From contig CM075977.1 of NCBI GenBank assembly GCA_038087875.1, positions 56,544,001-56,608,000 of the forward strand: a stretch of 64,000 nt of DNA, read 5' to 3'. Made by a program: the position numbers and the translations under genes. The number at the start of each line of letters is the position of its first letter. Within the stretch, counting starts at the first letter, position 1. Under the pieces are notes generated by a model, which did no database searches, was not told where the DNA came from, and was given only the letters and a program-made list of their open reading frames with translations. This DNA is from Malacoraja senta (Eukaryota). Below are positions 601 through 54,865 of this stretch, piece by piece.

Positions 601-1452
601 GGGTGGGCGGCGTGACTCACGTCGCAACGGCCTCTGCAGTCCGTCTGTCTTTTAAAAAATATTTTGTCTCGTTTGAGTGTAGTTATAGTGGGTTTTTTTA
701 ACTGGGTATGTGTGGGTGGGGGAGGGGGTAAACTTTTAAACCTTTTCCCTGTACGGAGGACCCAACCTTTCTCTGTCGGGTCTCCGTTGTCGTTGGAGCC
801 TAGCACGGTGGAGCAGCCTCCAACCGGAATGACCTGGGGCTCCAGTCGCGGAGCATGCGGACTACTTACCATCGCGGAGCTGGCCGAGTTCGGAGCGGGA
901 GGAGCTGTGGTGGCGCGCTGCTGCGGCCTGACCCTGGAGATTCGGAGGCTCCAGCCGCAGGTCTGGTGGACGGTGACATCGGGAGCTCGCGGGTCCCTGG
1001 TGGGAGACCGCTTTTCGGGGCTTCCACAACGGCTACTTCTCCCGCCCGAGTTCCGGGGTTGAAAATGACCTGGAGCGGGGCCTTACATCGCCCGGCGTGG
1101 CTTTAAATGGCCGCGGGACTTGCTAGAGCCCGCCTGGGCTCCAACATCAAGACCCGGAGCGTGGCCTTGCATTGCCCAGCGCGGCTTTAATGGCCGCGGG
1201 ACTTATTTACCATCGCCCGCCGGGGGCTTTGACTCTGACATCGGGAGGAGAATGGGGAGTGCAGGGGAGAGATAAGACTTTGCCTTCCACACAGCGAGGA
1301 GGAGATTCGCTGTGATGGATGTTTGTGTAAATTGTGTTGTGTCTTGGTTCTTCTACTTGTTTGTATGACTGTAGAAACCAAATTTCGTTTGAACCTCAAT
1401 GAGGTTCAAATGACAACAAATAAATTGTATCATTGTATCATTGTATCATTGT
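601..1452 (+). mobile_element. GC-rich non-autonomous retroposon, structured family, copy A
   Basis: No credible ORF. Family hairpin at 1286-1319. 3' stem-loop TTTGAACCTC-AAT-GAGGTTCAAA, then AATAAA and a (TTGTATCA)3 tail typical of TPRT products. Confidence 0.7.
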
Positions 1453-2637
1453 AAATACATAAACATAGCCACTAATATTTGATTACAAGATGACAAATTA
1501 AGGAAACAATCAATCTTACTAATCATTCACTTAGCTTGAAATGTGGCCCTAATTTCAGTGTACATTTCTAAAGCCAATATTAACCCCATCTGCAGGAAAA
1601 TTGTGTCCGTCTATATTTTCAAATACTGCAAACAGCATTTTGTAATTTATTTTATTTCAGTACACATTTGGTAATTATGACGTTTTTGGGTTGTGTATTA
1701 ATCGTAACATCAAAAACATATGAGGCGACAATCTTTTATTCTGCAATAAAAACAGACTTGACAGGTGACAGCAGTATGTACACTAAATTCCTCGCCCATC
1801 GATGTCTTTCTATTCTCGTTGCTTCATTAAATTTAAATTACTCCTGTTAGTGAGAACTTGACAACAGACTTGAAGTCAGTAAACCCTTCAGAATATCATT
1901 AGATTAAAATTTCTACTGCATGTTACAGGGTAAGTAAAAACAGTGGATTGTGCAAATAGGCTTAGTTCATTTCTAATGAAATCCACAATAGTATAGCATT
2001 TCCAAGGCCAGGATTAAAGCATATTCCAATAGTTTGACTCCGTGCTGCTTAAACTAAATTTCTGAAACCAATCGGAACCGGCACTATATAGCAAATTATT
2101 TATTTTTAAATTCACATCAGGAATTTGCAAAAGTTATACATTTTTAACATCTGTTAGCTGGCGAATTAATCTTAACATAAAGTCATTCACATTGAGTACT
2201 TGCTTTATCTTTACAGAGAGCCTACCAATTTGAAATATTAATTTCTGGTTTGTCATTGGTGATATAGCTGAGTTGAAAATACATTGCAGCAGCTGAGATG
2301 GGACCTTACCTCCCACGCCCTGTGTGGCACTCTGACTGTTCCGTGGTCGGCTGCAAGAGATGCCCCAGGCACAGAGATTGAGTGGTGGCCGTGTAAGGCA
2401 AGGGGCGGTCTTCGCGGGTCGATATGTCGGGATCGAGGTGTCAGTGGAGTGGGCCGTTAGAGGCCCTGCAGCAGCCTGGAGCTCGAATGGATCAGGTGCT
2501 GCTCCAAGAGGCTGAGCACACAGATCAGATCCAACCTGCAATGGCACGGAGCGAAGGAGCACCAATGGAGGACATCAACATCTCCTGACCAGGTCAGGAC
2601 AACGGGCCTTTATTCCCAAGTTAAGACTACATTCATA

Positions 2638-2735
2638 ACAACTTTGACTTTAGACTTTAGAGGGACAATTTATAGAAGCCAATTAACCGACAAACCTCTA
2701 GGTCTTTGGAGTGTGGGAGAAAACCGGAGCAACCG
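2638..2735 (-). mobile_element. V-SINE (HE1-like) fragment
   Basis: Matches the 3' half of the fuller SINE copies (agggacaattt...aagccaattaacc...tctttggagtgtgggag). Confidence 0.65.
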
Positions 2736-2740
2736 GTTAC

Positions 2741-2883
2741 TAGCCAGGGGCCACAGTTTAAGAATAAGGTGTAAGCAATTTAGAATGGAGATGAGGAAAC
2801 ACTTTATCACACAGAGAGTTGTGAGTCTGTGGAATTCTCTGCCTCGGAGGGCGGTGGAGGCCGGTTCTCTGGATACTTTCAAG
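2741..2883 (+). mobile_element. CR1/HER1-like LINE 3' fragment, left part (continues at 8466)
   Basis: RGHSLRI...FITQRVVSLWNSLP, the CR1 ORF2 C-terminus. The sequence resumes after the 2884-8465 insertion. Confidence 0.85.
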
Positions 2884-3159
2884 CAAAGATCATAGAGCGG
2901 AGCAAGATACTCCACTCCTGCGTAATCCAATGCACTAAGCTGTAGTACGTAACGGAGCTTAACAGCTGCCATCTTGGAATGCTCAACCCGACTTCCGTTA
3001 TGCCTCCTGCAGTGTCATCAGTAATGTAGGGGAACAGTATGTGTGTGATATTGCTCATCTATCAATTCACATATTTTAGTTAATTTTATTTTTAAATGTT
3101 TTCCCCCCTTAATCTATCTGTTTCTGCCCATTTCCCTCCCATCCTTCCTCCCCAGCGTA

Positions 3160-4740
3160 TCTATATTACTAAAAGTCTGATCTTAACCACTTCCTGTTGT
3201 TCTGTATATTAATGTTAGAAAAAATGCTGCCACTTACGGCTGCGATTTTTGGCCATTTTACTCAGAGTCCCCCTCCGATGCGCAGGACAAGAGGATTTTT
3301 CCCATCGATGAAAAATAAAAGAGTTATTAGTGTTTTAAAAATGTTGAGATTCTCTCTCCTGAAGGCCACGCACCTTCCAGAGGGACTATAAAACCCGGAA
3401 GTGTTGAGTGCCTCAGCCAGTCTCTGCAAGAAGGGGGAGCGAGAGGGTCACGTCTCTCAGTCTGAGCTGTGAATAACACTGAACACATGTCTACTAAACT
3501 GTGAGTGGTTTTACTGATCTGTCAGTGCCCTTAATGTGGTTTGAAACTATAGTTTGGAAATGCTAAAGCTGTGTTGACTTTGGTTTGGAAATGTAAAAGC
3601 TGTGTTGCCTTTGGTTTGGAAATTCTAAAGCTGTGTTGCGTTTGGTTTGGAAATGCTAAAGCTGTGTTGCCTTTGGTTTAGAAATGCTAAAGCTGTGTTG
3701 CCTTTGGTTTGGAAAAGCTAAAGCTGTGTTACCTTAGGTTTGGGAATGCTAAAACTGTGTTGCTTTTGGTTTGGAAAAGCTAAAGCTGTGTTGCCTTTGG
3801 TTTGGAAATGCTAAAGCTGTGTTGCCTTTGGTTTAGAAATGCTAAAGCTGTGTTGCCTTTGGTTTGGAAATGCTAAAGCTGTGTTGCCTTTGGTTTGGAA
3901 AGGCTAAAGCTGTGTTGCCTTTGGTTTGGAAAGGCTAAAGCTGTGTTGCCTTTGGTTTGGAAAGGCTAAAGCTGTGTTGCCTAATTAAAGTTGCCTTGCC
4001 TAATTAAAGTTGCCTTGCCTAATTAAAGTTGCCTTGCCTAATTAAGGTTGCCGTGCCTTCTATATAATTAAAAGTCTAATCTTGACCACTTCCTGTTTGC
4101 TCTATATATTGATTGTAGAAAAAACGCTACCACGTATGGCTGTGATTTTTGGCCATCTTACTCAGTCCCCCTCTGCTCATCAGGTGCCGAGGATGTTTCC
4201 CATCGATTAAAAATAAAAGAATTATTAGTGATTAAAAAATGTTGAGATTCTCTCTCCTGTCAATCACACCATGAAGGCCAGGCCCCTTCTGGTGGGAGGG
4301 GGAGGGACTATAAAACCCAGAAGTGTGGGCGTGGCCCAGTCTCTGCAAGATGGAGGAGGGAGAGGTCACGACTCGCTGTCTTTAGTGGCCTTGCACCCTG
4401 CTCGAAATGGTATGAAACTGCACTTGAATTTGGTGGCCTTGCACCCTGCTTGAAATGGAATTTCAAGGAATAGCCGTGAGTCAACTGCCAGCCCATCAGC
4501 CGTGAGTGAGTGAGCTGCCAGCACAACAGGCTTAAGTGACTGAGCTGCCAGCCCAAAAATCCATTCGGCCCACAATGTCCATATTAGCCCTCTGGAAACC
4601 AGTCCCTTCAGCCCACAACACCCATACTAGCACTCCAGAAAGCCCCCCCCCCCCCCCACTGGCCACCACTATAGGAATTGGTGGAGAGGTGGAATATTGC
4701 GTTGGGGGAGCCGCCCTCCCATGTGATGCTGGGACCCAAC
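3160..4740 (+). mobile_element. Non-autonomous Helitron with a duplicated 5' end and internal minisatellites; 3' end lies in the assembly gap
   Basis: Starts A|TCTATATTACTAAAAGTCTGATCTTAACCACTTCC, with a second copy of the 5' ~200 bp at 4059. The last bases GGGACCCAAC are the left arm and loop of the 3' hairpin seen complete in the 23149-24423 copy. Confidence 0.75.
3552..3981 (+). repeat. 31-bp minisatellite, about 14 copies, inside the Helitron
   Basis: Tandem unit GCTAAAGCTGTGTTGCCTTTGGTTTGGAAAT, followed by about 4 copies of TAATTAAAGTTGCCTTGCC (3982-4058). Confidence 0.95.
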
Positions 4741-4881
4741 NNNNNNNNNNNNNNNNNNNNNNNNNNNNNNNNNNNNNNNNNNNNNNNNNNNNNNNNNNNN
4801 NNNNNNNNNNNNNNNNNNNNNNNNNNNNNNNNNNNNNNNNNNNNNNNNNNNNNNNNNNNNNNNNNNNNNNNNNNNNNNNNN
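4741..4881. other. Assembly gap (run of N)
   Basis: Run of n characters. Confidence 1.
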
Positions 4882-5153
4882 AGAGATAAATAGATCTCAA
4901 AGTTCCTTCTCATGCATCAGAAGCAACTTTGATTTAAAAGCAACACTCTATTTCTCTCTTTATCTTGTTTGTCAGATGATGTACATAAACCATAAAGGCA
5001 TTTATATTTATAAATATATACATATAAATATATGCATATATATAAATATATTAATTCACAAATTTCAAATTCCTTAAAAAAAGTTGACAAGTACTTTAAT
5101 GGGTTCATGACTAACATAGTATCAACAGCAAATATTAAAAAAAAGATAGCATA

Positions 5154-5567
5154 AAATTAAATGTGGATTATGGAAATGTCGGAGACCCTACACCTGGAAA
5201 GAATCAGACTTGTCTTAATGGACAAACAAGAACTTTTTGTTAGAATATGGTCTCCATTCATTGACTATTTGAAGGGGTAAATCGGTTCGGCACGGGAACC
5301 TAACTGAAGCTTGCTTAGGATTAGATGAAAAGTTATACTCTATAATCTACGAACCTATCTCCAATGATGTATTATTAGTAAATCAATCCACTCTTTTTTT
5401 TTAATCTTGATATTTGTGGGTTTTTTTCTTTCTTTCTTACTTTCTATAAAAAAAAACTAGAAGCAGAATCAATCCACAATTGATAATATTAATAATGTAT
5501 GATTGATATACATGAAATGTTTTTACCATAATATGTTTTTGCTTCTAATAAAAATATTAATAAAAAT
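5154..5567 (+). mobile_element. 5'-truncated L1-clade LINE (ORF2 C-terminus and 3' UTR)
   Basis: 5161-5280 encodes MWIMEMSETLHLERIRLVLMDKQELFVRIWSPFIDYLKG*, a fish L1-type C-terminal motif. AATAAA and an A-rich tail follow. TSD AAAAAAAAGATAGCATA at 5137-5153 and 5568-5584. Confidence 0.75.
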
Positions 5568-5673
5568 AAAAAAAAGATAGCATATTGATGGCAAGTTTTC
5601 GAAAATGGCATCAGAATACACAAATACATTTTGTGTAACGGTTGTTGCGTGGTGTCCACCAGTGACCTGGTTG

Positions 5674-7065
5674 CAGGCACGTGCCGTGAGTAATTACTCA
5701 GGGTAGGTAGTCAGTCAGTCGGCTTTTTAAAAAATAACTTAAACCGCGCATGCGCAGATTGTTCTCTCCGTAAAAATAAAAATAAAAATAAAGACAGTAA
5801 CAATTCAATTTGCCAAAGGCTTCCAAGTCTCCTTGATTCTGAATTATTGAAAGGGTGTGGGGGTGAAGGGTGACGGCAGGTGGAGAGATGGTGGGAAAAA
5901 CGAGAGCACACAATTGTCATCTTATTGAATGACCACACTTGTTCAAGTGACCAATTGGGGGGAGAGTTCCTTTCACAGCGTGTGGAGAGTCTGACCAGGG
6001 GTAAAGTTGCGGGGAGGGCAGGAGTGTTGAGAAGGACGGGGTCAGGGATAATGGCAATAACTCACTCACTCCGGGCACGGAGCCACTGCAGCTTGGGCTG
6101 CGAGCGGCCGCCGGGACCGGACAGCAGAGCTAGCCACCACTTCAGCGCCTCCTGCCGGCCCGCTCACCTTTGGCAGTGCTCTCCGTTTGAACACCGCTCA
6201 CCTGCCGCTCGCCGCCTTCGCTCATGTCAGCCGCTTCCCGCAAATCCTTAAATTCCCACAGCCAAGTAACCTCAATCGTGCTGTCGGAATTTAAGGATTT
6301 GCGGGAAGCGGCTGACATGAGTGAGTCCAGCGAGCGGCAGGAGAGAGGTTTTCAGACGGAGAGATGCCAGAGGTGAGCGGGGGCCGGCAGAAGGAGCTGA
6401 GGTGGCAGCCGGTTCTGCTGTCCGGCCCGGTGGCCGCTCGCAGCCACCCTCCCCGACCACAATGCAGTGGCTCCATGCAAGGATCGTCGCAAGTGTGTTA
6501 CTGGCATGATCCCGATCCCCTCCTTCACAACGCTCCTGCCCTCCCCGCAACTTTACCCCGGGCCAGACTCCCCAAATGCTGTGAAAGGAACTCTCACTTT
6601 CCGGGCCCCACCCCAGGAAATACGGCATTTAAAATCATATAGCACCAAGAAATGTACTTACCACATTATCGGTACACAAACTCCATTCTTCTCTCTTTGT
6701 TTCTTAAAATACGCTTAAGATAATGGCAATCCATATTTGAAAAACCCGCTAAGAAACTAGCGCTGCGCATGCGCAGTAGGCTGCTGCGCCTGCGCAGTAC
6801 AGCAAAGGCAGAATTTCAGCTGCCTTCAGCCCCGCTTGTCATTGACGGCTCCAAGCAGCGCTGACGGCACGTGGGCTGCACAGACCTTCGCGTGTTGCAA
6901 GTGCTGCGGATGAAAGGCACGGAGAATTATGCCTACCTAAGAGATCGATCTCTTAGATAGGCATAATTCTCCCATGCCTTTACTATTTATATTTAGTAAT
7001 TACCATGTTATAATTTTAGTCAGGGTAGGCAGTGCCTATCTTGCCTACCCTGACGGCACTGCCTG
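5674..7065. mobile_element. Non-autonomous hAT-like fold-back DNA transposon
   Basis: Termini CAGGCACGTGCCGT and ACGGCAC-TGCCTG, 8-bp TSD CCTGGTTG (5666-5673 and 7066-7073). Long internal inverted repeat 5962-6262 / 6280-6595. Confidence 0.75.
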
Positions 7066-7503
7066 CCTGGTTGGCACAGTAAGTGCACATATTTCTTATT
7101 CCTTTCCATGTTTATGAATACCACATGGAACAATAAAATTGCAAACACCATTTCCACCATTGAACTGAGTGGACACCGCAATGCACGTTGCACGTTGCAC
7201 ATCATACACACAAATGCACACTAAATAAAATGTCCGTTTTGGTGGACCAGAAAATGAACGTTACATTATTAGCGAAAACCAAGCATTTTCACTGATGTGA
7301 TCTAACGGTACATTACCTTATGGATCTGAGCGCCATAGATGGCCGATGATTCATCAGAACATTTGATTTGGGCTGTTTTTTTGGTAAGTGAAATGTCTCC
7401 GTAACAGTCGTTGTGGAGCTTCCCGAAGTTAACACGAAGGAATGAAGTTGGCGAATTGAAGATTGGCTCAGTTTCTTGGTTTTGATGACCAATTTATGTC
7501 AAA

Positions 7504-7513
<10 letters not shown>

Positions 7514-7548
<35 letters not shown>
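7514..7548 (+). repeat. (CA)n microsatellite with (TA)n flanks
   Basis: Direct reading. Confidence 0.95.
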
Positions 7549-7551
<3 letters not shown>

Positions 7552-11917: not shown

Positions 11918-12210
11918 TTTAGTTTAGTTTAATTTAGAGATACAGCACGGAAACAGGCCCTTCGTCCCATCGATCCCCGTACACTAGCATTATCCGACGA
12001 GCAACAATTTACAATTATACCAATCCAATTAACCTACCAAACCTATACGTCTTTGGATTGTGGGAGGAAATCAGAGACCCCGAAGAAAACCCACGCAGGT
12101 CACGGGGAGAACGTACAAACTTCGTGCAAACAGCACCTGTAGTCAGGATTGAACCCGGGTCTCTGGCGCTGTAAGGCAGCAGCTCTACCACTGCTCCACC
12201 GTGCCGCCCT
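11918..12210 (-). mobile_element. tRNA-derived V-SINE (HE1-like)
   Basis: Head GGCGGCACGGTGGAGCAGTGGTAGAG...GGGTTCAATCC, V-domain TTTGTACGTTCTCCCCGTG, CR1-type tail with (TAAAC)n. Confidence 0.85.
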
Positions 12211-13140
12211 CTTTGATGCCACCACCGATTCTCTTTGAACATCCAAAATTAAGTGTGCTTTTACTCGCATTTGAGACTTAAGGTTGCACTTTTATCACAT
12301 TTATATCTAATTTTTAAAGAAAGAGAGAGAAAATATAGGAGAGGGCATAACTGCAAACTTACTATTCACATTGTCATGTCATACTTGTTACAGCTGTACG
12401 TTGCCCAATAAGTTGCAGTAGTGATTCAGATTCCAAGTCATGTTTTACTTTCTTGTTGTATAACTTTCAGAACTGGGCACCAAGAAAATGCTGAAGCAAG
12501 TGCGTAGTTTATGTTTGGTTACAGAGAACTGCATTTTTCCATGATGAGACTCAGAATATACAAGAAATACTAGATATGCATGCATTTGAAAAAAAAAGCT
12601 CCTTCCAACATAGAAAAACTCCAGTGACACCATGATCTAATGAAATGCAAACCTTACCCTTCTTTCCTTTATACCAGTACCATTTTCTAGGATTGTTCTT
12701 TCTTCCGAAACTTTTAAGACACTAATTTAGGTTCTCATAGCAAGAAGAGTAAGCAGTTCCTGCTTAGATAAATGAAACGCTGCATCCCAATTGATCAAAA
12801 TTTGATGAAAAATCTTTAAACACGACATCAAACAAACTCTGAACTATAACAGCCTATTGCACTTTATCTGTTTATTTATGTGTATATATATATGGTCTAT
12901 GCAATATAGACACACTGAACTTCTGTATTTATGCTTACAATATTCTGTTGTGCTGCAGCAAGCAAGAATTTCATTGTCCTATCTGGGACACATAACAATA
13001 AAACACTCTTGACTCTTTTAAAAGACAATTGGACTTGTACGTGTATAGGACACAACAAAGTGCAGCTGCCCATCAAATAAAGTTCTGTCAGAATAGAGAC
13101 TCCACTGCAGTGAAGGCAAAGATCGAGGAAAGTATGAATT

Positions 13141-13900
13141 AATCAGAATCAGAATCAGAATCAGATTTTATTCGCCAAGTATGTTTTGCAACATACGAGG
13201 ATTTTCACTGGCCAGGTCAGTCATACAATTAAAAGCAACAGACTCAAAAACACATTGAACATGAACATCCACCACAGTGACTCCGACACATTCCTCACTG
13301 TGATGGAAGGCGAAATAAAGTTCAAGTCCTTCCTTTGTTCATCCTCGGTCGGGGGCCTCGAGCCCTCCGTTGACGGGACGGTCTTAACTCCCGTAGCTGG
13401 CGGCGTTCAGGCCCTCCGCGTCGAGGTGTTCAGCTCCTGCATCGGGGGGATGTCATCTCCAATGCGCCGGGCGATCGAACCTCGCGTCGGGGCTGGACGA
13501 ACCTTCTGCGGCGTTGGAGCTCCCGACTCAGCCTCTCCCGAGACTGCGAGCCCTTGTTGGTAAGTCCACGGTGGTCGCGGTGGGAGCGATCCCAGGCAAG
13601 GGATCCGCTCCGATGTTAAGTCCACGCCCCGCGGTGGGGCTCATGACAGTCCGAGGCGGCTCCCAGCTCCAGCGATGGTAGGCCGCAGAGCCCGAAGAAT
13701 GTGATCCGAAAAATGATCACATCTCCGGGAAGGTAAGGACTTGAAAAAAAGTTTCCCCACATCCCCCCCCCCCCCCCCCCACACACATATTAAACAAACC
13801 GAAGAACATGAAAACAAACAGACGCTAAAAATAACAAAAAGTTGAAAAAACGAACAGACTGCCGGCAGGGCTGGCCATCGCCCCGGCGCCCCTGGTGGTC
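13141..13900 (-). mobile_element. GC-rich non-autonomous retroposon, structured family, copy B
   Basis: Family hairpin at 13268-13307. 3' stem-loop GTATGTT-GCAA-AACATAC, then AATAAA and a (TCTGAT)n tail. Homologous to 53576-54865. Confidence 0.75.
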
Positions 13901-14630: not shown

Positions 14631-17526
14631 CAGTGCATTCAGAAAGTATTCAGACCCCTTCACTTTTTCCACATTTTGTTACGTTACAGCTTTATTTTTA
14701 AATGGATTAAATTTTTTTTTTTAATTATCAATCTACACACGATACCCCAGAATGAAGAAGCGAAAACAGGTGCTTAGAAATTTTTGCAAAGTAATTAAAA
14801 ATAAATAACTGAAATATCACATTTACATAAGTATTCAGACCCTTAGCTATGACACTCAAAATTGAGCCTAGGTTCATCTTATTTCCATTGATTATCCTTG
14901 AGATGTTTCTACAACTTGATTGGAGTCCACCAGTGGTAAATTAAATTGATTGGACATGATTTGGAAAGGCACACACCTGTCTATATAAGGTCCCACAGTT
15001 GACAGTGCATGTCAGAGCAAAAACCAAGCCATGAAGACGAAGGAATTGTCCGCAGATCTCCGAGACAGGATTGTGTCGAGACACAGATCTGGGGAAGGGT
15101 ATAAAACTATTTCTGCAGCATTGCAGGTCCCGAAGAGAACAGTGGCCTCCGCCATTCTTAAATGGAAGAACGTTGGAACCACCAGGACTCTTCATAGAGC
15201 TGTCCGCCCGGCTAAACTGAGCAATCGGGGGAGAAGGGCCTTGGTCCGGGAGGTGACCAAGAACCCGATGGTCACTCTGACAGAGCTCCAGAACTCTGTG
15301 GAGATGGGAGAACCTTCCAGAAGGACAACTATATCTGCCAAGCGTCATGTCAGGAGGAAACCAGGCACCGCTAATCACCTGGCCAATACCATACCTACAG
15401 TGAAGCATGGTGGTGGCAGCATCATGGTGTAGGGATGGTTTTCAGCGGCAGGAACTTGGAGACGAGTCAGGATCAAGGGAAACAGGAATGGAGCAAAGTA
15501 CAGAGAGATCCTTGATGAAAACTTGGTCCAGAGTATTCTGGATCTCAAACTGGGGCAGAGGTTCATCTTCCAACAGGACAACGACCTTAGCACACAGCTA
15601 AGACAACGTAGGAGTGGCTTCATGACAAATCTGTGAATGTCCTTGAGTGGCCCAGCCAGAGCCCGGACTTGAACCTGATCGAGCACTCTGGAGGGACCTG
15701 AAAATAGCTGTGCATCGACGCTCCCCATTCAACCTGACAGAGCTTGAGAGGAACTGCAGAGAAGAATGGGAGAAATTACCCAAATACAGGTGTGCCAAGC
15801 TTGTAGCGTCATACCCAAGAAGACTTGAGGCTGTAATCGCTGCCAAAGGTGCCTCAACAAAGTACTGAGTAAAGGGTCTGAATACTTATGTAAATGTGAT
15901 ATTTCAGTTATTTATTTTTAATTACTTTGCAAAAATTTCTAAATACCTGTATTTGCTTTATTATTATGGGGTTATCATCATCGGCGGTCACTCGAAACGA
16001 GTATGACTGTCCTCTCCATAAGAGTCGTCTACTTCTGGGTCTGCAGATGTCTGTCGAGGCCGATCCGCTCACCTTGGTACAACGTGGGCAGTGGAGACTG
16101 GCAGTGTTTGTCGTCGAGCCCCCTTCTCTCTCTCCTTACGGTGCTGTTGCTTTGTCTCTGCGACACGGCGTAGTTCCATTTCGTGACTTGCAGCTCCTTC
16201 CTGTACGGATTTCCTCCAGGAGCATCTGTCCAGTGCAATGTGCTCCCAGTTGCTCGATGTGATGTGGAATTTCTTCAGACTTCTTGATGTTGTCCTTGAA
16301 GCATTTCTTTGGCCCGCCGGGGGCTCGCCGACCTTCCTTAAATTGAGAGTACAGGATTTGTTTACGGAGGCGTGTGTTGGAAATGTGGAAGACATGGCCA
16401 GTCCATTGAAGTTGGTGCTGCATTATTGTGGTGATTTATCTGGTCATGTTGGCTTCCTCCAAAACGCTGATGTTGGTGTGTTTGTCCTCCCAGCTGATCC
16501 TCAGAATCTTTCGTAAGGATCTTTGATGATATTGTTCCAGGGCAGCAGACATGATATTCACCGCACGACAACTCCAGGAAAAATGCCGTGAACAATGGTA
16601 GCCTTTGTACATGGCCTTCATAGACCTGACAAAGGCTTTTGACTCGGTAGACCGCCATGCTCTTTGGAGCATACTATCAAGGTATGGTTGCCATTACAAG
16701 TACATCAGAATATTGAGGCTTCTACATGATGGCATGTCGGTCACAGTGCTCAGCAACTGCGGCTCTGAGTCTGAGCCCTTCACTGTGGGAACGGGGGTCA
16801 AACAGGGATGCATCATCGCACCCACCCTGTTTGTCGTCTTCATTGCTGCCATACTTCACCTCATTGGTGAAGCGCTGCCACAGGGGATTCCAATCCTCTA
16901 CAGAACTGACGGTGGTCTCTTCAACCTTAATAGGTTGAAGGCCAAGAGCAAAGTCAGTTACACCGCCATCATGGAGCTTCAGTACATGGACGACTGTGCC
17001 ATTGCAGCACACTATGCAGAAGACATCCAGGGCATCCTGAATGCCTTTGCCAAGGCATACAGAGCCATGGGCCTAGCCTTAAATATCAAGAAGACCCAGG
17101 TCCTACATCAACCTCCACCCAACCAGCCGTCTACCCAGCCAACTATAAAAGTGGACACCACTCTTGAAAATGTTGACCACTTCCCCTACCTTGGCAGCAT
17201 TCTTTCCTCAAAAGCTGATATTGACTCTGAGGTCAACCATTGCCAGCGGAGCCTACGCCAGCCTCAGGAAAAGAATCTTTGAAGACCGAGACCTAAAGGC
17301 TCAAACAAAACTGCTGGTCCACAGAGCCGTTGTCCTCTCCACCCTGTTGTATGGAGCCGAGTCATGGACCACCTACAGCAGGCACCTGAGAGCCCTGGAA
17401 CAATTATGGGGTATTCTGTGTAGATTGATGACAAAACAAAATGATTTTAATCAATTTTAGAATAAGGCCTTAATGTAACAAAATGTGGGAAAGATGAAGG
17501 GGTCTAAATACTTTCTGAATGCACTG
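14631..17526 (+). mobile_element. Defective Tc1-like (IR/DR type) transposon, interrupted by an RTE
   Basis: TA|CAGTGCATTCAGAAAGTATT...AATACTTTCTGAATGCACTG|TA. Inner DRs near 14826 and 15872. Transposase remnant 15031-15868 (MKTKELSADLRDRIV...GEGYKTIS; VKHGGGSIMV; QQDND; WPSQSPDLN) with a deletion, stops and frameshifts. Confidence 0.92.
15973..17402 (-). mobile_element. RTE-clade LINE, 5'-truncated, with an inverted 5' segment
   Basis: TSD ATTATGGGGT (15963-15972 and 17403-17412). The 3' part is on the minus strand (15973-16543; ALEQYHQRSLRKILRISWED, (TGA)n tail). The RT part is on the plus strand (16544-17402; AFIDLTKAFDSV, GVKQGCIIAP, QYMDDC). Confidence 0.88.
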
Positions 17527-21831: not shown

Positions 21832-22012
21832 AGAATAAGAGTGCAATCTCCTAGCCTGCCCAATCTCTCCCTATAGCTCAGGCCCTCGCACCCTGGCAAT
21901 ATCTTCGTAAATCTTCTCTGCACTCTTTGCAGCTTAATGGTATCTTTCCCATAGCAGGGCGACCAGAACAGGACACAATACTCCAAGTGTGGCCTCACAA
22001 ACATCTTTGACA
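21832..22012 (-). mobile_element. CR1 LINE fragment
   Basis: VRPHLEYCVLFWSP...LQRVQRRFTKILPG...LSYRERL. Confidence 0.85.
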
Positions 22013-22014
22013 AT

Positions 22015-23146
22015 TATACATTGGTGATCATTTTCCAATGTTCTATAGACTCTAGATCAGTTGCTGTGGACTGGAGGGTAGCTAATGTAACCCCACTTTT
22101 TTATGAAAGGAGGGAGAGAGAAAAAGGGGAAATAAAGACCAGTCAGCCTTACATCAGTAGTGGAGAAGATGCTTGAGTCGATTATTAAAGATGTTATAGC
22201 AGTGCATTTCGAAAGCAGTGACAGGATCGGTCAGAGTCAGCATGGATTTGTGAAGGGGACTTGCTTGACTAAGTATGCTTGACTAATCTTCTGGAATTTT
22301 TTGAGGATATAACAAGTACAACGGATATGGGAGAGCCAGTGGATGTGGTGTATCTAGACTTTCAAAAAGCCTTTGACAAGGTCCCACACAAGAGATTAGT
22401 GTGCAAAATTAGAGCACATGGTATTGGGGGTAGGGTTGAGATAGAGAACTGATTGGCAGACAGGAAGCAAAGAGTAGGAATTAACGGGTCATTTTCAGAA
22501 TGGCAGGTGGTGCAGTGGGGTGCCGTAAGGCTCAGTGCTAGGACCAGTTATTTACAATATATATTGATGATTTAGATGAGGGAGTTAAATGTAACATCTC
22601 CAAGTTTGCAGATGAAACAAAGCTGGGTGGCAATGTGAGCTTCGAGGAAGATGCTATGAGGCTGCAGGGTGACTTGGATAGGTTGGGTGATTGGGCAGAT
22701 GCAGTATAATGTGAATAAATGTGAGGTTATCCACTTTGGTGGCAAAAACACAAAGGCAGATTATTATCTGAATGGTGTCAGATTAGGAAAGGGGAATTGC
22801 AACGAGACCTGGGTGTCCTTGTACATCAGTCTTTGAAAGTAAGCACGACTCACTTACACACAGCAGGCAGTGAAGAAAGCAAATGGCCTTCATAGCAAGA
22901 GGATTTGAGTAAAGGAGCAAGGAGATCCTACTGCAGTTGTACAGGGCCCTGGTGAGACCGTACCTGGAGTATTGTGTTCAGTTTTGGTCTCCTAATTTGA
23001 GGAAGGACATTCTTGCTATCGAGGGAGTGCAACGTAGGTTCACCAGGTTAATCCCAGGATGCCGGGACTGATATATGATGAAAGAATGGGTCGACTGGGC
23101 TTGCATAGACTGGAATTTAGAAGGATGAAAGGATATCTTATAGAAA
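22015..23146 (+). mobile_element. Degenerate CR1/HER1-like LINE RT region (continues at 25011)
   Basis: DWRVANVTPLF, SQHGF, YLDFQKAFDKVPH, ISKFADETK and VRPYLEYCVQFWSP in shifting frames. Confidence 0.9.
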
Positions 23147-23148
23147 TG

Positions 23149-24423
23149 CTAGACTAAGTGGGACCCGTTGGGTCCCAGTCACATGGGAGGTCTGGTCCCC
23201 CAATGCAACCCATTCCCCAATGCAATATTCCACCACTCACCTGTTCCCCCAACGCAATGGCAGGAGCGTTCTGTAGCCGGGGGATGGGAATGGCTTCAGG
23301 CAGGAAGCGTCCTGCAGCCAGGGGAGGGGGACGGCTTCAGGCGGGGCATGTAGGGTGTGGGGGAGGGGGGCTGTGTGGGGGAGGGTGTGTGTGGGGGGGG
23401 GGGGTGTGTGTGGGGGGGAGGGTGTGTGGGGGTAGGGGAGGGGGTGTATGTGGAATGGGGAGGGGTGTTGATGGTAGGGGTATGTGGGGTAGGGGGTGTG
23501 GGGAGGGGGTGTGTGGGGGAGGGGGTGTGGGGGGAGGGGGTTTGTGGGGGACGGTGTGTGTGGGGGAGGGGGTGTATGTGGGGGGGAGGGGTGTGGGTGG
23601 AGTGGGGGAGGGGTGTGTGGGAGAGGGGGTGTGGGGGAGAGGTGGTGTAGGGGAGGGTGGGGTGTTGGGGAGGGGGTTGTGGGGGAAGGGGTGTGTGTGG
23701 GGGAGGGGGTGTGGGGGAGGTGTTGTGGGGGAGGGAGTGTGTAGTGGAGGGGGGTGTCGGGGAGGGGGGAGGGTGTCGGGGTGGGGGAGTGTGGGAGGGG
23801 GGTTGTTGGATGGAGGTGTGTGGGCTCACCTGTTCCCGGCTCCAGCTCCGACTGCACTCCCTGCTCCAGGACCCGGCTCCGGACTCACTCAGCTGCTCCC
23901 GTCCCCAGCGCCTGTCGCGCTCACAGCCCCCGCCCGCACCCGCGGACACAGCCCGCCCTCACCCACGAGCACAGCCCGCCCCCGCCCGTGAACACAGCCC
24001 GCCCCCGCCCGCGAACACAGCCTGCTCCCGCCCGCGAACACAGCCCGCCTCCGCCCGCGGACCACAGCCCACACTCCGCTGCTTCAGCTTTATTCTCGGC
24101 GGCTTGTGGACGGGCGGCTTCTAAACGTGCTCACGGACTCAGCCCTGCCTCCGGGGATTTATTCTTCAGCGGGTGCCGGAAGGGTCGTTACCTTCATGGA
24201 GAATGACAGGCGAGAAGACCAATCTGCTGATCTCACGATTTTGTAAACCTTCATAACTTTTGTAATCTTCCACCGATCGGAACAAAACTTGGTGCGCTTG
24301 GAGCAGAGGAGAACGGTGAGTAAGGTGGCGAGTAATCCTAGCGATATAGGGTGGCGTTTTTGCTCAAATTTAAAAACATCGCAGACCGGAAGTGGTCAAG
24401 ATGAGAGTTTTAGTAATAGTAGA
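23149..24423 (-). mobile_element. Complete non-autonomous Helitron
   Basis: The minus strand starts TCTACTATTACTAAAACTCTCATCTTGACCACTTCC. It ends with an 8-bp-stem hairpin TGGGACCC-AAC-GGGTCCCA (23159-23177) followed by CTTAGTCTAG. No TSD. The interior is a G-rich tract plus a ~23-bp minisatellite. Confidence 0.8.
23340..24075 (+). repeat. G-rich low-complexity tract (23340-23820) and CACAGCCCGCCCCCGCCCGCGAA minisatellite (23920-24075)
   Basis: Direct reading. Confidence 0.9.
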
Positions 24424-27458: not shown

Positions 27459-28279
27459 TCAAAGTCAAAGGACAAAGGACATTTATTGTCACATAAACCA
27501 ATTGGTGCAGTGAAATTTGAGTTACCATGCAGCACACAAATAAGATAAACACAACACTTTAGAATTTAACATAAAACATAAAAAACATCCCCCCGCAGCG
27601 GAATCAACGTTTCCCGCTGTGAGGGAAGGCACCAAAGTTCTGACCTCTTCCTCTGTTCACACGTGATTGGGGCCTATTGAGGCCTCCGCAGTTGCCGCTA
27701 CGGGCCCGATGTTTCAGGCCCTCGAACGGAAGAACACTCTCAGCAGCCCGGAGCCTCCGAATCAGCCGCTTCCTACCGGGGACCGCGGCTCCCGAAGTCC
27801 ACAGGCCGAGCTGTGTGGAGATTCAACACTGGTGACCTCGGCGAGAGATCCCAGGCTCCGCGATGTCAAAGTCAGCGCCGCCCATGGCTGGAAGCTCCAC
27901 AGACCACTGCTCCACGGTGTTGAAGTCGGCAGTCGCAGCACTCCGGAGCTCCAACACGGCGATTCCCGGTAAGGCATCGCTCGCTCCGCGATGGAATCCA
28001 GTGCTGCGCCGCTGCTGAAGCTGAAGCTCTGGCCGGTTTCCGGCAGGAAAGGCCATGCCAATCCAGATGGTAGGCCGCAAGGAGGGGGTGAAGATGCGGT
28101 TCGGAGGATAGGCGCATCCTCGACCAGGAAGTGACTGAGAAAAACGGTTTCCCCCCCTCCCCCCACATAAAAAAGACTAAAGACCTCAAAAAACAAACTT
28201 TAAAACAGATTAAAAATAACAAAAAGATGATAGGACAGACAGCTGCAGGCGAGGCAGCCACACTCGATGGCGCCACCAG
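27459..28279 (-). mobile_element. GC-rich non-autonomous retroposon, structured family, copy C (Rex1-type tail)
   Basis: Head GGTGGCGCCATCG, family hairpin 27588-27626, tail AATTTCACTGCACC...GTGACAATAAA plus (GTCCTTT)n. Confidence 0.75.
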
Positions 28280-28659
28280 TCACCACCACTCATTTGTAAT
28301 AATGAGGGAAACAAGGGGATCACAATAAGGAGGGTGTGGAACGTGAGCTGGTAACAATGTGGCTCCCGATGATTACACCAGATTGAGACTAGAAGTTTGA
28401 GGAATAGAACGGGGAAGATGCAGAGGGAGGGATGTTTTTACATGACCCCAGAAAACATAATTCTTTGAATGCCACATTTTAAATCATTGACTACTCAGCA
28501 TTTGTTAGGATAACACTGAGGTGCCAGTCCAGATCATATCCAGGTCTCTGGTGTGTTGAACATAAAGCAAATATGCAGGTTTGGTTATGATATGATTGTA
28601 TAAAAATAACAAATGTGGAATGCCAATTGTTTTCAGAATGTATATTTAGATTTGCTTAT

Positions 28660-49060: not shown

Positions 49061-49074
49061 GTTAACATATGGTA

Positions 49075-51288
49075 CTCGCTGCCGTTTGGAAGAATGAGGG
49101 GGGACCTTATTGAAACGTACAGAATAGTGTAAGGCTTGGATTGAGTGGACGTGGAGAGGATGTTTCCACTACTGGGAGAGTCTAGGACTAGAGGTCATAG
49201 CCTCAGAATTAAAGGACATTTTCAGGAAGGAGATGAGGAGGTACATGGAGTCACAGATGGAGCAGCAGGAGGTGCAGGGACAAGATGGAGTCACAGATGG
49301 AGCAGCAGGACACCAGACACCTTAGGCAGGGGCTTCGGACTATAACTAAATACCGGAGCACCCTCCCCCCCCTTACCGGAAGTGCCAGCACCTCCCTAGC
49401 TGATGACCTGAACTCTTTCTATGCACGTTTCGAGACAGGCAACATCACCCCAGGCGTGCCAGCTAACAACAACACCGCCCGCGAGCTGGCCAGCGAGGCT
49501 GGAGGGAGGTCCTCCGCTGGGGATGGATACACATTCTCATTGCCCGAGCACGACGTGAGGAGGGCTCTGACACAAGGGCTCTGACACACGTGAACACGAG
49601 GAAAGCTGCTGGCCCAGATGGCATATCTGGGCGAGTATTTAAGTCCTGTGCTACTCAGCTAGCTCTGGTGCTCAATACAATATTCAACCTCTCCCTGGCC
49701 TAGTCCGTGGTCCCTGCCTGCTTCAAAAGATCCATCATTGTACCTGTCATGAAATGCTTTGAGAGGCAGGTCAAGAACCACATCTCACAACAAGGACCCG
49801 CTACAGTTCACATACCGTCCGAACAGATCCACGGACGATGCGATCTCCCATGCACCCCGCTCTCTCTCACCTTGACAGCCAGAAGGGGGGCTATGTGAAG
49901 ATGCTGTTCATTGACTTCAGTTCAGCCTTCAACACGATAGTCCCCACCAGACTTGCTGAGAAGCTGCTGGAATTGGGGCTCAACACCCCCCTGTGTGCCT
50001 GGGTCCTGGACTTTCTCACCGACAGGCCCCAGGTAGTCAAGATGGGAGAAAATACATTGAAGACCCTCACACTGAGCACAGGATCCCCCCCAGGGTTGCA
50101 TCCTCAACCCCCTACTGTACTCCCTGTACACACATGACTGTGTGGCCAGGTTTAGCTCCAACTCTGTAATCAAGTTTGCTGATGACACTGTGGTGGTGGG
50201 CCTGATCACCGAAAATAATGAGAAGAGCTGATCTGGCACTCTGGTGTCAGGACAACAGCCTCCTCTTGAATGTCAAAAAAACGAAGGAGCTGATCGTGGA
50301 CTTTCGGAGGGCACAACATCCGAGGACGTACATGCCACTGAAGATAAATGGGGATAATGTGGATAGGGTGAGCTGCTTTAAATAGCTGGGAGTCCACATC
50401 TCAGAGGATCTGACATGGACATCACACGCTGCCACACTGGTGAGTAAGGCAAGGCAGCGCCTTTACCACCTCAGGCAATTGAGGAAATTCAGTCTCTCTG
50501 AGGATCCTCCAGTGCTTCTACTCAGCGGCTGTAGAAAGCATCTTGTCCGGAAACATCACAATCTGGTTTGGGAACTGCGCTGCCCAGGACAAGAAGACTC
50601 TGCAGAGAGTAGTACATTTGGCCAAACGCACTGTGGGAACTACACTCACCCCTCTGCAGGAACTATACATCAGAAGGTGCAGATCCAGAGCCAGCAACAT
50701 TATGGGGGACCCCTTCCACCCCAACAACAGACTGTTCCAGCTGCTACGGTCAGGCAAATGCCTCCGCTGTCATGCTGTGAAAACAGAGAGGATGAGAAGG
50801 AGTTTCTTCCCAGAGGCCATTAGGACTGTAAACTCTCATCTCACCAGGGACTAACTTACTGTACCAATTTACTGTTGTGTTGTGTCTTTTTAAAATTGCA
50901 GTTTTTTTCTCACAATATGTAATTACTGATTCTGTTCTATTCTGTTTTGTAGGGTTTTTTTTTGCACAATCCGCAAGCATTGCCACTTTTCAATTCACTG
51001 CACATCTCGTATGCGTATGTGACAAATAAACTTGACTTGACTTGAAACATTTCTTTAGTCAGAGGGTGGTGAATCTGTGGAATTCTTTGCCACAGAAGGC
51101 TGTGGAGACCGTCAGTGGATATATTTAAGGCAGAGATGGAAAGATTCTTGATTAGTACAGGTGTCAGAAATTATAGGGAAAAGGCAGAAGAATGGGGTGA
51201 GGAGGGAGAGATAGATCAGCCATGATTGAATGGCAGAGTGGACTTGATGGGCCAAATGGCCTAATTCTGCTATCACATGATCTTATGA
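49075..51288 (+). mobile_element. CR1 3' fragment split by a Rex1/Babar insertion (parts 49075-49240 and 51046-51288)
   Basis: VDVERMFPLLGESRTRGHSLRIKG, resuming at FFSQRVVNLWNSLP after the insertion. Confidence 0.8.
49241..51045 (+). mobile_element. Degenerate, 5'-truncated Rex1/Babar LINE
   Basis: [39 protein letters not shown] and RSFFPEAIR, with many frameshifts. 3' stem-loop plus (CTTGA)n. Confidence 0.88.
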
Positions 51289-52235
51289 AACTTCACCAAT
51301 TCCTTTTTCTAGAGATGATGCTGCTTGACCCACTGAGTTACTCCAGCATTTTGTGCCTGTCTTTGGTGTAAACCAACATCTGCAGTTCCTTCCTAGACAT
51401 ACCACATATTACCTGACCGGCTTTGTTTTAACCCTCCTCTCTTTCAGCGCCCCCCCTTTCCCCTTCACAATGTCTGAAGAAGGGTCCAGACCCAAAACCT
51501 ACCAATGTTCTCCAAAGATGATGCCTGACCCGCTGATTTATTCCAACACTTTGTGTCATCTTTTGTAAACCAGCATTTCTTTCCACATATAAATGTTCAC
51601 ATCAATTGAATTCAACCACACAGTGGATAAATTTGTAGCAATTTCTCATTTTCTGATCTCACATACAAGTAACTTTATCTGGCATAGACCGTTCCCAAGT
51701 GAAGATTGTGCCCATTGGACAATAGGCCCAGGCAATTCTATGCACAGTTTATCTTGGTGCACCTGATATTTGTCCGGGGTCAGTGATGCACCTAATGGCA
51801 TCACCAGTTACACACGGCATATTACCTCTGTACTGATGTAAATTGGAGACTTTGGATGCAGTCCATGACCTTGCTGAACACTCACAGTAGTCACTGGGAG
51901 TTCTTTAATCGGTGTTCACTTTAAACGGACACTCTGTTCACAGCAAGAGATCAGATGGGACAGGTTCACGATTCACTGCAGGCTGCATAAACACCACCAA
52001 AGTTCACTGAATGTGCTTAGACTAACAGGGAGTGTGTGTCTAGCATGAAGCTGCCACAAATCCCATTAAGTGGGACCTCAAGTTGTGATACCATGGCAGC
52101 TCTCCATTAGCAACCTATTCCAGCTGATTATAGAAGTGTCCTCAGCAAAAGCTGTAGCCACACCAGAATCGATGAAGAATAATATCTGCTCTAAATGAAA
52201 ATGCATTTGAACAAAATATGTTCAACATCATTATG

Positions 52236-52445
52236 CTGAAGAAGGGTTCCATCACCTGTCCATGTTCTCCAGAGATGCTGCCCGACCTGCTGAGTTGCTC
52301 CAGAACTTTGAATCTTTTTTTTATAAACCAACATCTGCAGGTGATGTTTCGGGTCGGAACCCTTCTTCAGAACCCGAAACGTCACCTATCCATGTTCTCC
52401 AGAGATGGTGCCTGACCCACTGAGCACTCCAGCCCTTTGTGCCAA
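52236..52445. mobile_element. Cluster of Penelope pLTR fragments in both orientations, including a minus-strand hammerhead motif (52340-52370)
   Basis: Minus strand CTGAAGAAGGGTTCCGACCCGAAACATCACC, with + strand copies on each side. Confidence 0.65.
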
Positions 52446-52724
52446 CAGTCTGAAGGTGGCTCATCTAGGGTAAGAGCTTCTTGTGGGTCATCTGGACATC
52501 TGTATTGACTCAAAGGAAAAGGGATCAATCGTACAAGGGTCGCTGTGATGCAGCACTAGAACTATGAAACCCACATATATGTGGTGAAATGGGAGAACAC
52601 TGAGCTGTATTATTTCAACTAAAAATATGATTTATAAAGTCTTATTATTTGACTTTTTCTATTAAAATGATGTTGAACATATAAGCATTGTTCAACTGCA
52701 TTTAATTTAGAGCAAATATTATCT

Positions 52725-53025
52725 TTAGACTTTAGAGATACAGCGCGGAAACGGTCCCTTTGGCCCAATGTGTCCGTACCGACCTGTGATCACCCTACAC
52801 TAACACTATCCCAAATATTAGGGACAATTTTACAACTTACCAAAGCCAATTAACCTACAAACCTGTACATCTTTGGAGTGTGGGAGGAAACCGGAGCACC
52901 CGGCAAAAACACGAGGTCACAAGAAGAACGTACAAACTCCATTTTGACAGCACCCGTAGTCAGGATCGAACCTGGGTCTCTGGTGCTGCAAGCACTATAA
53001 GGCTGCAACTACTACGGTGCTACCC
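52725..53025 (-). mobile_element. V-SINE (HE1-like)
   Basis: Same structure as 11918-12210. Confidence 0.82.
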
Positions 53026-53267
53026 TTAATCGCCCTTCATCGATTTTGTTGTGACTGTTGCTGGCATTGCTGTAGACATTCAGACTGTTGGCCATGGCCA
53101 GTGGAAAGAACATTGTGGGATGAGTGGCTGTGGGACACAGGTGAATATGCTGCTTAGGAGGTTGATGTGGGGAGTGAATTGTGAAAGGAGACATCAATGC
53201 GCTGAACCTGCCACCCGATGGTGTCCTGGGACTAGGGTGCGACAATCAGTTGGCATTCAACCTCCTG

Positions 53268-53433
53268 ACGAGAGAGCTAGATAGGGCTCTTAAAGATAGC
53301 GGAGTCAGGGGATATGGGGAGAAGGCAGGAACGGGGTACTGATTGGGGATGATCAGCCATGATCACATTGAATGGCGGTGCTGGATCGAAGGGCCGAATG
53401 GCCTACTCCTGCACCTATTGTCTATGTCTATTG
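53268..53433 (+). mobile_element. CR1/HER1 3' end
   Basis: GAGAGAGCTAGATAGGGCTC...GGGCCGAATGGCCTACTCC. Confidence 0.8.
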
Positions 53434-53575
53434 ACACAATGCAAACCCACCGACAGATTTTAAATCTCTAGAGTTTGCTCCCTGCTGTGATCAATCTTCT
53501 CTCTGAAATCTGCACATAGTGCAATTTAAGCAGGACTCTGTTCACACTGAAAGCAAGAATGAATGGGTGTTTGGA

Positions 53576-54865
53576 TACCACCGGGTGCGCCGTACAATTG
53601 GCAGCCTCGCCAACAGTCTGTCTGTTTTTTAGTATTTTTTAGTTATTTTTAGTGTGTTTTAAAAGTTTGTGTAAATGTTCCCTGGTTTCTTTTATGTGGG
53701 AGGTGGGGAAGGGGGTCGGGGGAAACTTTTTTCAGTCTCTTACCTTGCCAGAGATGCGATTGGTTTTCGGGTCGTCTCTCCGGTCGCTCTGCGGCCTAAA
53801 GGGCCTGTCCCACTTGGGCGACCTAATCCGCGAGTTCTGGCAAGTTTGCCCTCGACTTATACTCGCAGCATGGTCGACACGAGGTCGTAGGAGGTCTTTG
53901 TAACTCTCCTTCATGCTCGAGAGTGGTCTCCACGTACTCGAGGCCTCAGCGTTTTTTTCAATATGTTAAAAAATGCCCGCGAGTAAAGGTCGCCATGGAA
54001 AAATTCGATACTTTTTTTACTCGTAGGTTTAGTCGTAGTAGGTCGTAGTAGGTCGGGATGTTAGTCGTAGGTAGTCAAGGGTAGTCGTAGATACTCTTCA
54101 TCATTGTCGAAGTGAGGTCGAAGGAGATCGAAGGAGGTCGTCTTCACTCTCCACTATTCGGTGTCCAATTTTCCCGAAGTTAGTCGTAGCTAGTCGAAGC
54201 TAGTCTTCAACATAGTCAAAGGAGGTCGAAGGAGGTCTTCTACATAGTCAAAGGAGGTCTTCAACTTGTCATTTTTTCAAACTCTTCTAAACTCGCCAAT
54301 TAGGTCGCCCAAGTGGGACAGCCCCTTAACATCTTGGGGCTGGAGGCCTCCTCGGGACTGACTTTGAGCCCCACCGCGGTGCGTGGACTTACCATGAGGG
54401 CCGATCCCTTGCCTGGGATCGCTCCAACCGCAGCCTGCAGATTTGACCATCAAGGGTTCGCAGTCTCAGGAGAGACTGAGTCGGGAGGCTCCAACGACGC
54501 AGAGGTTCGACCAGCCCCGAACTGCGGTTCGATCGCCGGCGAGGGGGAGCTGAGATTTCTCCCCCCCCCCGATGCAGGAGCTGATCGCCCCGATGTGGAG
54601 GGCTCGACCACAGGCTACGGGAGTAAGATTGTCCCATCAACGGAAGGCTCGAGGCCCTCAACCACGGGAGAACAAAGAAGGGAAGAGATTGAACTTTTTT
54701 TTCGCCTTCCATCACAGTGAGGAATGTGGAGGAGTCACTGCGGTGGATGTTTATGTTAAAATGCATTTTGGGTGTTCAGTTGCTTTTTATTTGTATGACT
54801 GACTTGGCAAATGAAATTCCTCGTATGTTGCAAAATTCCTCGTATGTTGAAATTCCTCGTATGTT
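53576..54865 (+). mobile_element. GC-rich non-autonomous retroposon, structured family, copy E (interrupted by MITE 6)
   Basis: Colinear with copy B. Family hairpin at 54708-54747. The end stutters AAATTCCTCGTATGTT three times. Confidence 0.75.
53800..54326. mobile_element. PIF/Harbinger-type MITE 6
   Basis: TIR AGGGCCTGTCCCACTTGGGCGACCTAAT, TSD TAA (53797-53799 and 54327-54329). The interior is the reverse-complement relative of MITE 4. Confidence 0.85.

Follow-up and report, generated by a model that had tools for sequence, protein, structure and literature searches.

The stretch of DNA analyzed here (hereafter, the window) consists of 64 000 nucleotides of the genome of the skate Malacoraja senta (assembly GCA_038087875.1, contig CM075977.1, positions 56,544,001 to 56,608,000 of the forward strand) and contains five places, denoted A to E, that an earlier note, made from the sequence alone, had assigned to one family with the same order of parts. 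Reading and alignment confirm these as true copies of a single superfamily with the stated order, and a BLAST search inside the window detects precisely these five copies. They probably represent non-coding, non-autonomous retroposons of the RNA polymerase II (Pol II) type that depend on long interspersed elements (LINEs) and combine a portable, structured body with exchangeable tails of the L2 type.

Starting from the 5' end, the elements consist of a GC-rich head of ~45-50 bases that ends in CAG(T)CTGTC, a T-rich stretch, a G-tract ending in GGGG(A/T)AAC, hairpin 1, a conserved box (GCGGCCTACCATC, replaced by GGAGCCTAGCAC in copy A), a CpG-rich body of 450-550 bases with loose ..ACTT..(A/C)CATCG.. 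modules, (GA)ACTTT..GCCT, hairpin 2, TGTT, another T-rich stretch, a terminal hairpin, a GACAATAAA-like box and a microsatellite (Table 1). The element length varies between 0.76 and 0.85 kb across the superfamily. The repeated GACTT..ACATCG modules described previously are real, with 2-5 occurrences of CATCG in the bodies of copies A to D compared with ~0.4 expected, but they are loose, and CATCG is absent from copy E; Tandem Repeats Finder reports only the 3' microsatellite.

The limits initially given for the copies are broadly right, with several corrections. The copy A insertion spans 594-1452, as shown by the empty site described below, copy D starts at ~45066, and C-type elements begin 3-4 bases further upstream, with (C)GAG before TGGTGGCGCC, window copy C itself starting at ~28291 due to a 13-base duplication. 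Copy E is real but does not form one span because it is broken up by an unrelated non-coding element of 527 bp (53800-54326) that lies within its conserved box. This element has 24-bp terminal inverted repeats (TIRs; AGGG(C/G)CTGTCCCACTTGGGCGACC) with TAA on both sides and looks like a PIF/Harbinger-type miniature inverted-repeat transposable element. None of the five copies includes the assembly gap at 4741-4881, which therefore does not affect the finding.

Table 1. Coordinates of the retroposon copies, their parts and the truncated LINE fragments, counted from the first base of the window
Feature	Position	Strand	Remarks
Copy A, A-type, complete insertion	594-1452	+	594-600 = extra 5' AAAGATT; element proper 601-1452
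Copy A, GC-rich head	601-649	+	Small stem-loop GCGAC-UCAC-GUCGC, then CTGCAG..GTCTGTC
Copy A, T-rich stretch, then G-tract	650-733	+	G-tract ends in GGGGTAAAC (712-733)
Copy A, hairpin 1	754-786	+	RNAalifold helix; fold z -3.5
Copy A, conserved box	795-806	+	GGAGCCTAGCAC (GCGGCCTACCATC in other subfamilies)
Copy A, CpG-rich body	807-1285	+	Loose ..ACTT..(A/C)CATCG.. modules; CpG observed/expected ~1.0
Copy A, 55-base internal duplication	1067-1121 and 1151-1204	+	
Copy A, hairpin 2	1286-1319	+	One T short of the 13-bp stem of the family; family form fold z -4.6
Copy A, L2-type 3' end	1388-1453	+	Terminal hairpin 1388-1410; AATAAA 1419-1424; (ATTGTATC)n 1424-1453
Copy B, B/E-type	13141-13900	-	Head 13851-13900; hairpin 1 13691-13729; box 13674-13686
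Copy B, 3' parts		-	Hairpin 2 13268-13307; terminal hairpin 13175-13197; AATAAA 13167-13172, then (GATTCT)n
5'-truncated LINE fragment	16605-17400	+	Reverse transcriptase piece cut off on the 3' side
Copy C, C-type	27459-28291	-	Head 28233-28291 with 13-base 5' duplication; hairpin 1 28090-28121; box 28066-28078
Copy C, 3' parts		-	Hairpin 2 27588-27626; terminal hairpin 27489-27513; AATAAA 27482-27487, then (TGTCCTT)n
5'-truncated LINE fragment	35207-36535	+	RVT_1 and ALKBH8_N; ends in GACAATAAAGG(AATTG)n
Copy D, C-like body with foreign LINE tail	44183-45066	-	Hairpin 1 44868-44899; hairpin 2 44340-44378
Copy D, tail	44204-44265	-	Junction ~44260-44265; (TTGA)n 44183-44203
5'-truncated LINE fragment	49746-51040	+	Ends in GTGACAAATAAA(CTTGA)n; tail most like those of C-type elements
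Copy E, B/E-type, split by unrelated insertion	53576-54865	+	Head 53576-53624; hairpin 1 53748-53783
Copy E, remaining parts		+	Box split 53799/54327; hairpin 2 54708-54747; 3' end = tandem repeat of terminal-hairpin arm

The copies were originally considered to be non-coding, and this holds: the three sense frames are broken in all five copies and no reading frame is common to the subfamilies. Hidden coding capacity was considered and rejected given that the 130-144-amino acid open reading frames (ORFs) of the GC-rich body are not kept between subfamilies; a protein search with the A-type ORF found no relatives.

Copy number, fixed ends and recent insertion

The superfamily is abundant in its own genome. 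The first-look candidates number 11 189 with the C-type query, 5869 with the A-type query and 6665-7130 with the B-type query, and the best 40 matches scored for each query are nearly all full length, at 83-93% identity. For the A type, 30 full-length genomic copies show 91-93% identity, and the divergence from the majority sequence is 4% for the A-type copies and 6% for the C-type copies. Five pairs of loci from different places (L013/L014, L016/L018, L021/L022, L034/L036 and L038/L041) have in common not only the element but also flanks that are near-identical, which reflects segmental duplications or redundant haplotype contigs in the assembly, so the copy counts are somewhat inflated.

The 5' ends are fixed. 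A-type copies start with GGGTGGG in ~19 of the 29 other loci and with GGTGG(G/A) in 3 more, most C-type copies start with GAGTGGTGGCGCC, and when the B-type query is extended by 60 bases, most of the matches still begin within a few bases of position 13900. In three copies, the first 13-25 bases are duplicated at the 5' end, as expected of a reverse transcriptase that jumps at the end of the RNA template.

The insertion of copy A can be traced directly. In the DNA run X17 from a related organism (organism F), whose flanks differ from the window by ~2-3%, one contig links window positions 410-593 directly to 1453-2100 and thus represents the empty site. The insertion was accompanied by a target duplication of at most 3 bases (AAA) and by four extra bases (GATT). 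Target-site duplications of at least 6 bases are not found above the shuffled-pair control among 60 copies, in agreement with integration of the CR1/L2 group. The interspersed repeats of the window are 80-99% identical to those of a locus of Leucoraja erinacea (L061), where L2-like LINEs are present and no copy of the retroposon family was found.

Two individual arrangements were observed among the genomic copies. In the copy at L043:742-1450, the 5' part, starting from the exact 5' end of the element, has the reverse orientation and abuts the 3' arm of hairpin 2, which is itself in direct orientation; this arrangement looks like a product of twin priming with a break inside hairpin 2. A C-type copy (L016:2321-2694, with its duplicate in L018) and an A-type copy (L045:2354-2737) are both placed tail-to-tail with, and oriented opposite to, the truncated 3' untranslated region (UTR) of the same LINE family, with the junctions within ~11 bases of one point, possibly a preferred target.

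Covarying hairpins, LINE-derived tails and RNA

Both internal hairpins are kept by compensatory changes. The earlier note had pointed out that the hairpin 2 stem is maintained while the loops differ, and in an alignment of ten representatives of distinct subfamilies, 97.7% of the 129 cells indeed contain standard pairs, with the stem constant and the loop varying from none to 17 bases. The hairpin itself is thus genuine, whereas two of the arms quoted in that note carry private mutations of the window copies: the majority form is TCCATCACAGCGA/TCGCTGTGATGGA, a perfect stem of 13 bp, in the A type and ...CAGTGG/CCGCTGTGGGGGGA in the C type. Both sides have changed in 3 of the 13 pairs, namely, 12/49 (A-U to C-G), 19/41 (U-A to C-G via U-G) and 21/39 (A-U to G-C), and pair 13/48 occurs as U-A, U-G and C-G. 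The covariation score was reached by 1 of 500 shuffles, and in the slid-partner controls, 26-59% of the cells are paired. Covariation between subfamilies, noted at the outset, extends to both hairpins and is stronger for hairpin 1, where, in the RNAalifold structure of nine representatives, 8 of the 11 pairs have changed on both sides, with the score again reached by 1 of 500 shuffles. Single-sequence folds of the two hairpins yield z of -2.5 to -5.3.

Hairpin 2 immediately precedes the T-rich region through which the element passes into the LINE-derived tail. Its covariance model, run across 307 kb of sequence, yields 71 strong matches, all of them in family copies, indicating that hairpin 2 is a part of the body of the family, and no match in the more than 10 sampled 3' UTRs of L2-like LINEs. 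An origin of hairpin 2 as a piece of a LINE 3' UTR is accordingly rejected for the sampled LINEs, and so is a derivation of its 5' arm from the end of ORF2 (codons of ..NSFFPxAIRLLN), for which local alignment is at the chance level (z of at most 2.5).

The tails are of a different provenance. As recognized initially from the LINE-type 3' end, they match the 3' ends of L2-like LINEs of the same genome, fragments of which are numerous in the window and in the sampled loci (tblastn), and in the alignments, only the last 50-60 bases are similar. When its last 70 bases are compared, copy B aligns with a LINE in L025 (z of 8.9), with the same GTATGT..ACATAC stem and TTGGC(C/G)AATAAA, and the tails of copy C and of L027x match the LINE fragment at 49746-51040 (z of 5-8; 5.2 for copy C); these matches are to sampled LINEs, among which there are no partners with near-identical tails. 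The ORF2 proteins of the L2 clade require their own 3' stem-loop (PMC4176376).

Copy D presents a case of tail swap. Its C-like body extends to the junction at ~44260-44265 and is followed by another tail (..CAGCACTTTGG..ATAAATAAA, then (TTGA)n), of a type also found behind a different LINE-like coding end in L004. The junction is crossed by at least seven other genomic copies, whereas the match to C-type copies stops there; the existence of further junction-spanning copies implies that the D chimera itself has transposed.

The elements are represented in poly(A)+ RNA over their full length, a result of the RNA sequencing proposed as a check in the earlier note. The majority sequences contain a single AATAAA 20-25 bases from the 3' end and have a CpG observed/expected ratio of ~1.0. 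In the poly(A)-selected paired-end run X20 of organism F, coverage extends over 570-1440, with both flanks empty, and the first mates on the minus strand outnumber those on the plus strand by 4-25:1. If the usual dUTP rule applies (the library is uncalibrated in this respect), such a bias points to sense RNA. Furthermore, 280 of the X20 reads carry one common upstream string that ends in GATTA before GTGGGCGG, and GATT precedes the head in copy A and in L045. This string may point to an expressed source locus whose start varies slightly, which would be expected of a transcription start more than of an exact cut by a ribozyme. Separately, X20 RNA, taken relative to X17 DNA, is ~10 times deeper in the first third of the element, from the head to the first modules, than in the 3' half, and 60 X20 RNA reads contain a joint that skips 685-767 (the T/G-tract); both observations possibly reflect shorter expressed variants.

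Mobilization and competing explanations

The most probable scenario is that transcription, most likely by Pol II, takes place at a small number of source copies and begins at the first base of the GC-rich head, and that the RNA ends past AATAAA and the short microsatellite. The last 50-60 bases of this RNA (terminal stem-loop, GACAATAAA-like box and microsatellite) would be a copy of the 3' end of an L2-like LINE of the CR1 group; the ORF2 protein of the partner LINE would recognize this tail and reverse-transcribe the RNA at the nicked target, and integration would leave a target duplication of zero or few bases. The body, from the head through the T-tract, G-tract, hairpin 1 and CpG-rich modules to hairpin 2, would be the portable part of the family, joined to the tails of several LINEs. 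Selection acting on the source copies is likely to maintain the two hairpins, probably because they stabilize the RNA or help the transposition particle to assemble; their role might also involve binding of a LINE or host protein.

Several points weigh against this scenario. Pair 19/41 of hairpin 2 sits on paired CpG sites, with single-decay forms frequent among the A-type copies, so that the changes in this C-G/U-A pair could result from neutral CpG decay on both arms; this part of the original covariation claim is weakened, although CpG decay does not explain the changes in pairs 12/49 (two transversions) and 21/39. The covariation as a whole comes from 9-10 related sequences. As for the RNA, no pile-up of starts at base 601 is reported, approximately half of the reads at the 5' edge continue upstream, and 338 X20 reads continue into varied upstream sequence, which implies that much of this RNA is read-through. 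The strand bias could also arise from sense copies that act as poly(A) sites for host transcripts.

The main rival explanation, which is unlikely, is that the copies are internally deleted LINEs, in which the head and hairpin 1 derive from the 5' UTR of an L2-like LINE, and hairpin 2 together with the tail from its 3' UTR. The tails are, clearly, LINE-derived, the CpG-rich modular body is reminiscent of the repeated promoter units in some LINE 5' UTRs, and a fixed 5' end with Pol II-type features would suit a LINE promoter. On the 3' side, where the comparison was made, this explanation is weakened because the similarity to LINEs does not extend beyond the last 50-60 bases, the hairpin 2 model finds no counterpart in the sampled LINE 3' UTRs, and the same body is found with tails that come from several families of LINEs and also from a second type of LINE.

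Much less probable is a retroposon headed by a ribozyme, where a head similar to the hepatitis delta virus (HDV) and CPEB3 ribozymes would cut the 5' end of the element out of host read-through transcripts. The reads that enter varied upstream flanks with no reported start pile-up at the head would be compatible with such processing, and the string CTCACGTCGCAGC in the A-type head (12 bases), which we take to resemble the P3/L3 core of the CPEB3 ribozyme, served as a lead only. A 5' stem-loop that includes a small hairpin of the GCC..GGC type (GCGAC..GUCGC in copy A) is a frequent fold of the heads, with z not significant, and a consensus fold of the heads is unsupported, with MAFFT and RNAalifold producing only a weak 5-pair helix. 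An HDV/CPEB3-like head was rejected: the fold is a plain nested stem-loop in which P2 and P1.1 are absent and no partner for them can be drawn, P1 is not conserved, and the 5'-most bases differ between subfamilies (GGGTGGG, GACCACC and GAGTGG) without a covarying partner. Rfam contains no matching ribozyme family for copies A, B and C even at E-values up to 10, and the four extra 5' bases (GATT) in some copies are better compatible with a variable transcription start.

A standard short interspersed element (SINE) transcribed by RNA polymerase III (Pol III), with a tRNA-derived head that has decayed past recognition, is highly improbable, in line with the original view that this is not a standard tRNA SINE. 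The loop ATCGAGT in the C-type head is a partial box B-like string, but it is not kept in other subfamilies, and the alignment reveals no box A or box B conserved across subfamilies. The Rfam check suggested in the earlier note turned up no family for the whole window at the gathering score, and for copies A, B and C at E-values up to 10, it produced only chance-level, hairpin-shaped matches (mir-503 and mir-999); tRNA, 5S, 7SL, small nuclear RNA and ribozymes were all missing from these scans. Transcription by Pol III in vertebrates ends at runs of T4-T5. There are 7 runs of T4-T7 in the A-type majority sequence and 9 in the C-type one, beginning at base 50-55, so a full-length Pol III transcript is unlikely, and both the length of 0.8 kb and the poly(A)+ RNA over the full element speak against this origin. 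A kinship with the common tRNA-like SINE of skates through CCTCACAGCG was also rejected, as this is only a short common word inside the tRNA-like part of that SINE; the window itself contains such a SINE (GGCACGGTGGAGCAGTGGTAGAGCTGCTGCCTTACAGCGCCAGAGACCCGGGTTCAATCC...) at ~12000-12215 on the minus strand, unrelated to the family except for this word.

Finally, it is hardly credible that the hairpins are chance inverted repeats or, as had been raised earlier as a potential refutation, remnants of DNA-transposon TIRs, with the apparent covariation reduced to neutral CpG decay: pair 19/41 (C-G, U-G, U-A) and the common single-decayed A-type forms would fit, but pairs 12/49 and 21/39, the 8 compensated pairs of hairpin 1, the stems that stay paired while the loops vary in both length and sequence, and the confinement of the hairpins to fixed internal sites of a LINE-tailed retroposon, and nowhere else in the 307 kb, do not.

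Relation to known retroposons and neighboring features

Textbook non-autonomous retroposons are mostly short Pol III SINEs and, to our knowledge, long, non-coding, LINE-dependent elements of the Pol II type are represented mainly by SVA in apes. The SVA elements of hominids are composite, non-coding retroposons that are transcribed by Pol II and mobilized by L1. Like SVA, the skate elements are long, non-coding and GC/CpG-rich, with a repeated middle part, a poly(A) signal, no Pol III promoter and dependence on a LINE in trans. However, SVA consists of Alu and HERV-K pieces and uses the relaxed poly(A) route of L1, whereas the skate family has no recognizable donor pieces and carries sequence-specific L2-type tails, so the comparison does not imply sequence kinship. 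It is possible, although this is offered only tentatively, that the skate elements comprise an undescribed superfamily of structured Pol II-type retroposons, a counterpart of SVA, in which the covarying hairpins are functional modules, for example, docking sites for LINE or host proteins, mobilized with the tails of several LINE clades.

Closer parallels to the tails are found in the SINE/LINE pairs of the L2 clade (eel UnaSINE1/UnaL2 and zebrafish ZfL2-1 and ZfL2-2), which share with the skate family the terminal stem-loop and short repeats of the partner LINE, along with partner-specific tails, and are mobilized by an ORF2 protein of the stringent type (PMC4176376), as is probably the case in the skate as well. 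The SINEs of these pairs have Pol III heads of tRNA origin and measure 100-400 bases, in contrast to the skate elements, which are 0.8 kb long, have a head without a match to any small RNA and internal Pol III terminators, and possess two conserved hairpins outside the LINE part. The SINEs with conserved central domains (V-SINEs including the elasmobranch HE1, CORE, Deu and Meta; PMC4824008, PMC5499810) resemble the skate family in combining a conserved middle segment, maintained from one subfamily to another, with changing heads or LINE tails, but their domains are conserved in sequence across animal classes and follow tRNA or 5S heads, whereas in the skate family conservation consists mainly of compensated pairs within one skate group; this separation is made by description. 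In the passerine TguSINE1 (PMC5729268), as in copy D, the body gained the 3' end of another LINE and the chimera spread. The process is known, but in the skate, it connects a tail of the L2 type with a second type of LINE on a body that is not of the Pol III kind.

The suggestion in the earlier note that this might be an undescribed class is not supported as it stands: the anatomy is that of a non-autonomous retroposon that depends on the tail of a stringent LINE, a well-known kind, and the 3' stem-loop with a short repeat is the recognized signal of the L2 clade (PMC4176376). What is unusual about the skate family is the combination of a head that is not of the Pol III type, the length of 0.8 kb, the CpG-rich modular body, the two covarying hairpins outside the LINE part and the several LINE partners. 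Searches of the full-text literature revealed no account of such a family in skates, a scope that excludes Dfam and Repbase. An abundant, young, tail-swapping family with two compensated hairpins is a natural system in which to study what, beyond the LINE tail, a parasitic RNA needs for stringent copying of the L2 type. The family is also relevant to the annotation of skate genomes, in which some ten thousand copies or more, amounting to about 1% of the DNA, would otherwise be labeled 'unknown'.

Apart from the retroposons and LINE fragments, the window includes a GC-rich region at 22001-24200 (54% GC, GC skew of 0.40) with several overlapping ORFs of 150-277 amino acids on both strands. The only ORF of this region that was tested (23158-23991) has no Pfam match. 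The region resembles a repeat in the Leucoraja locus L061 (4022-4790).

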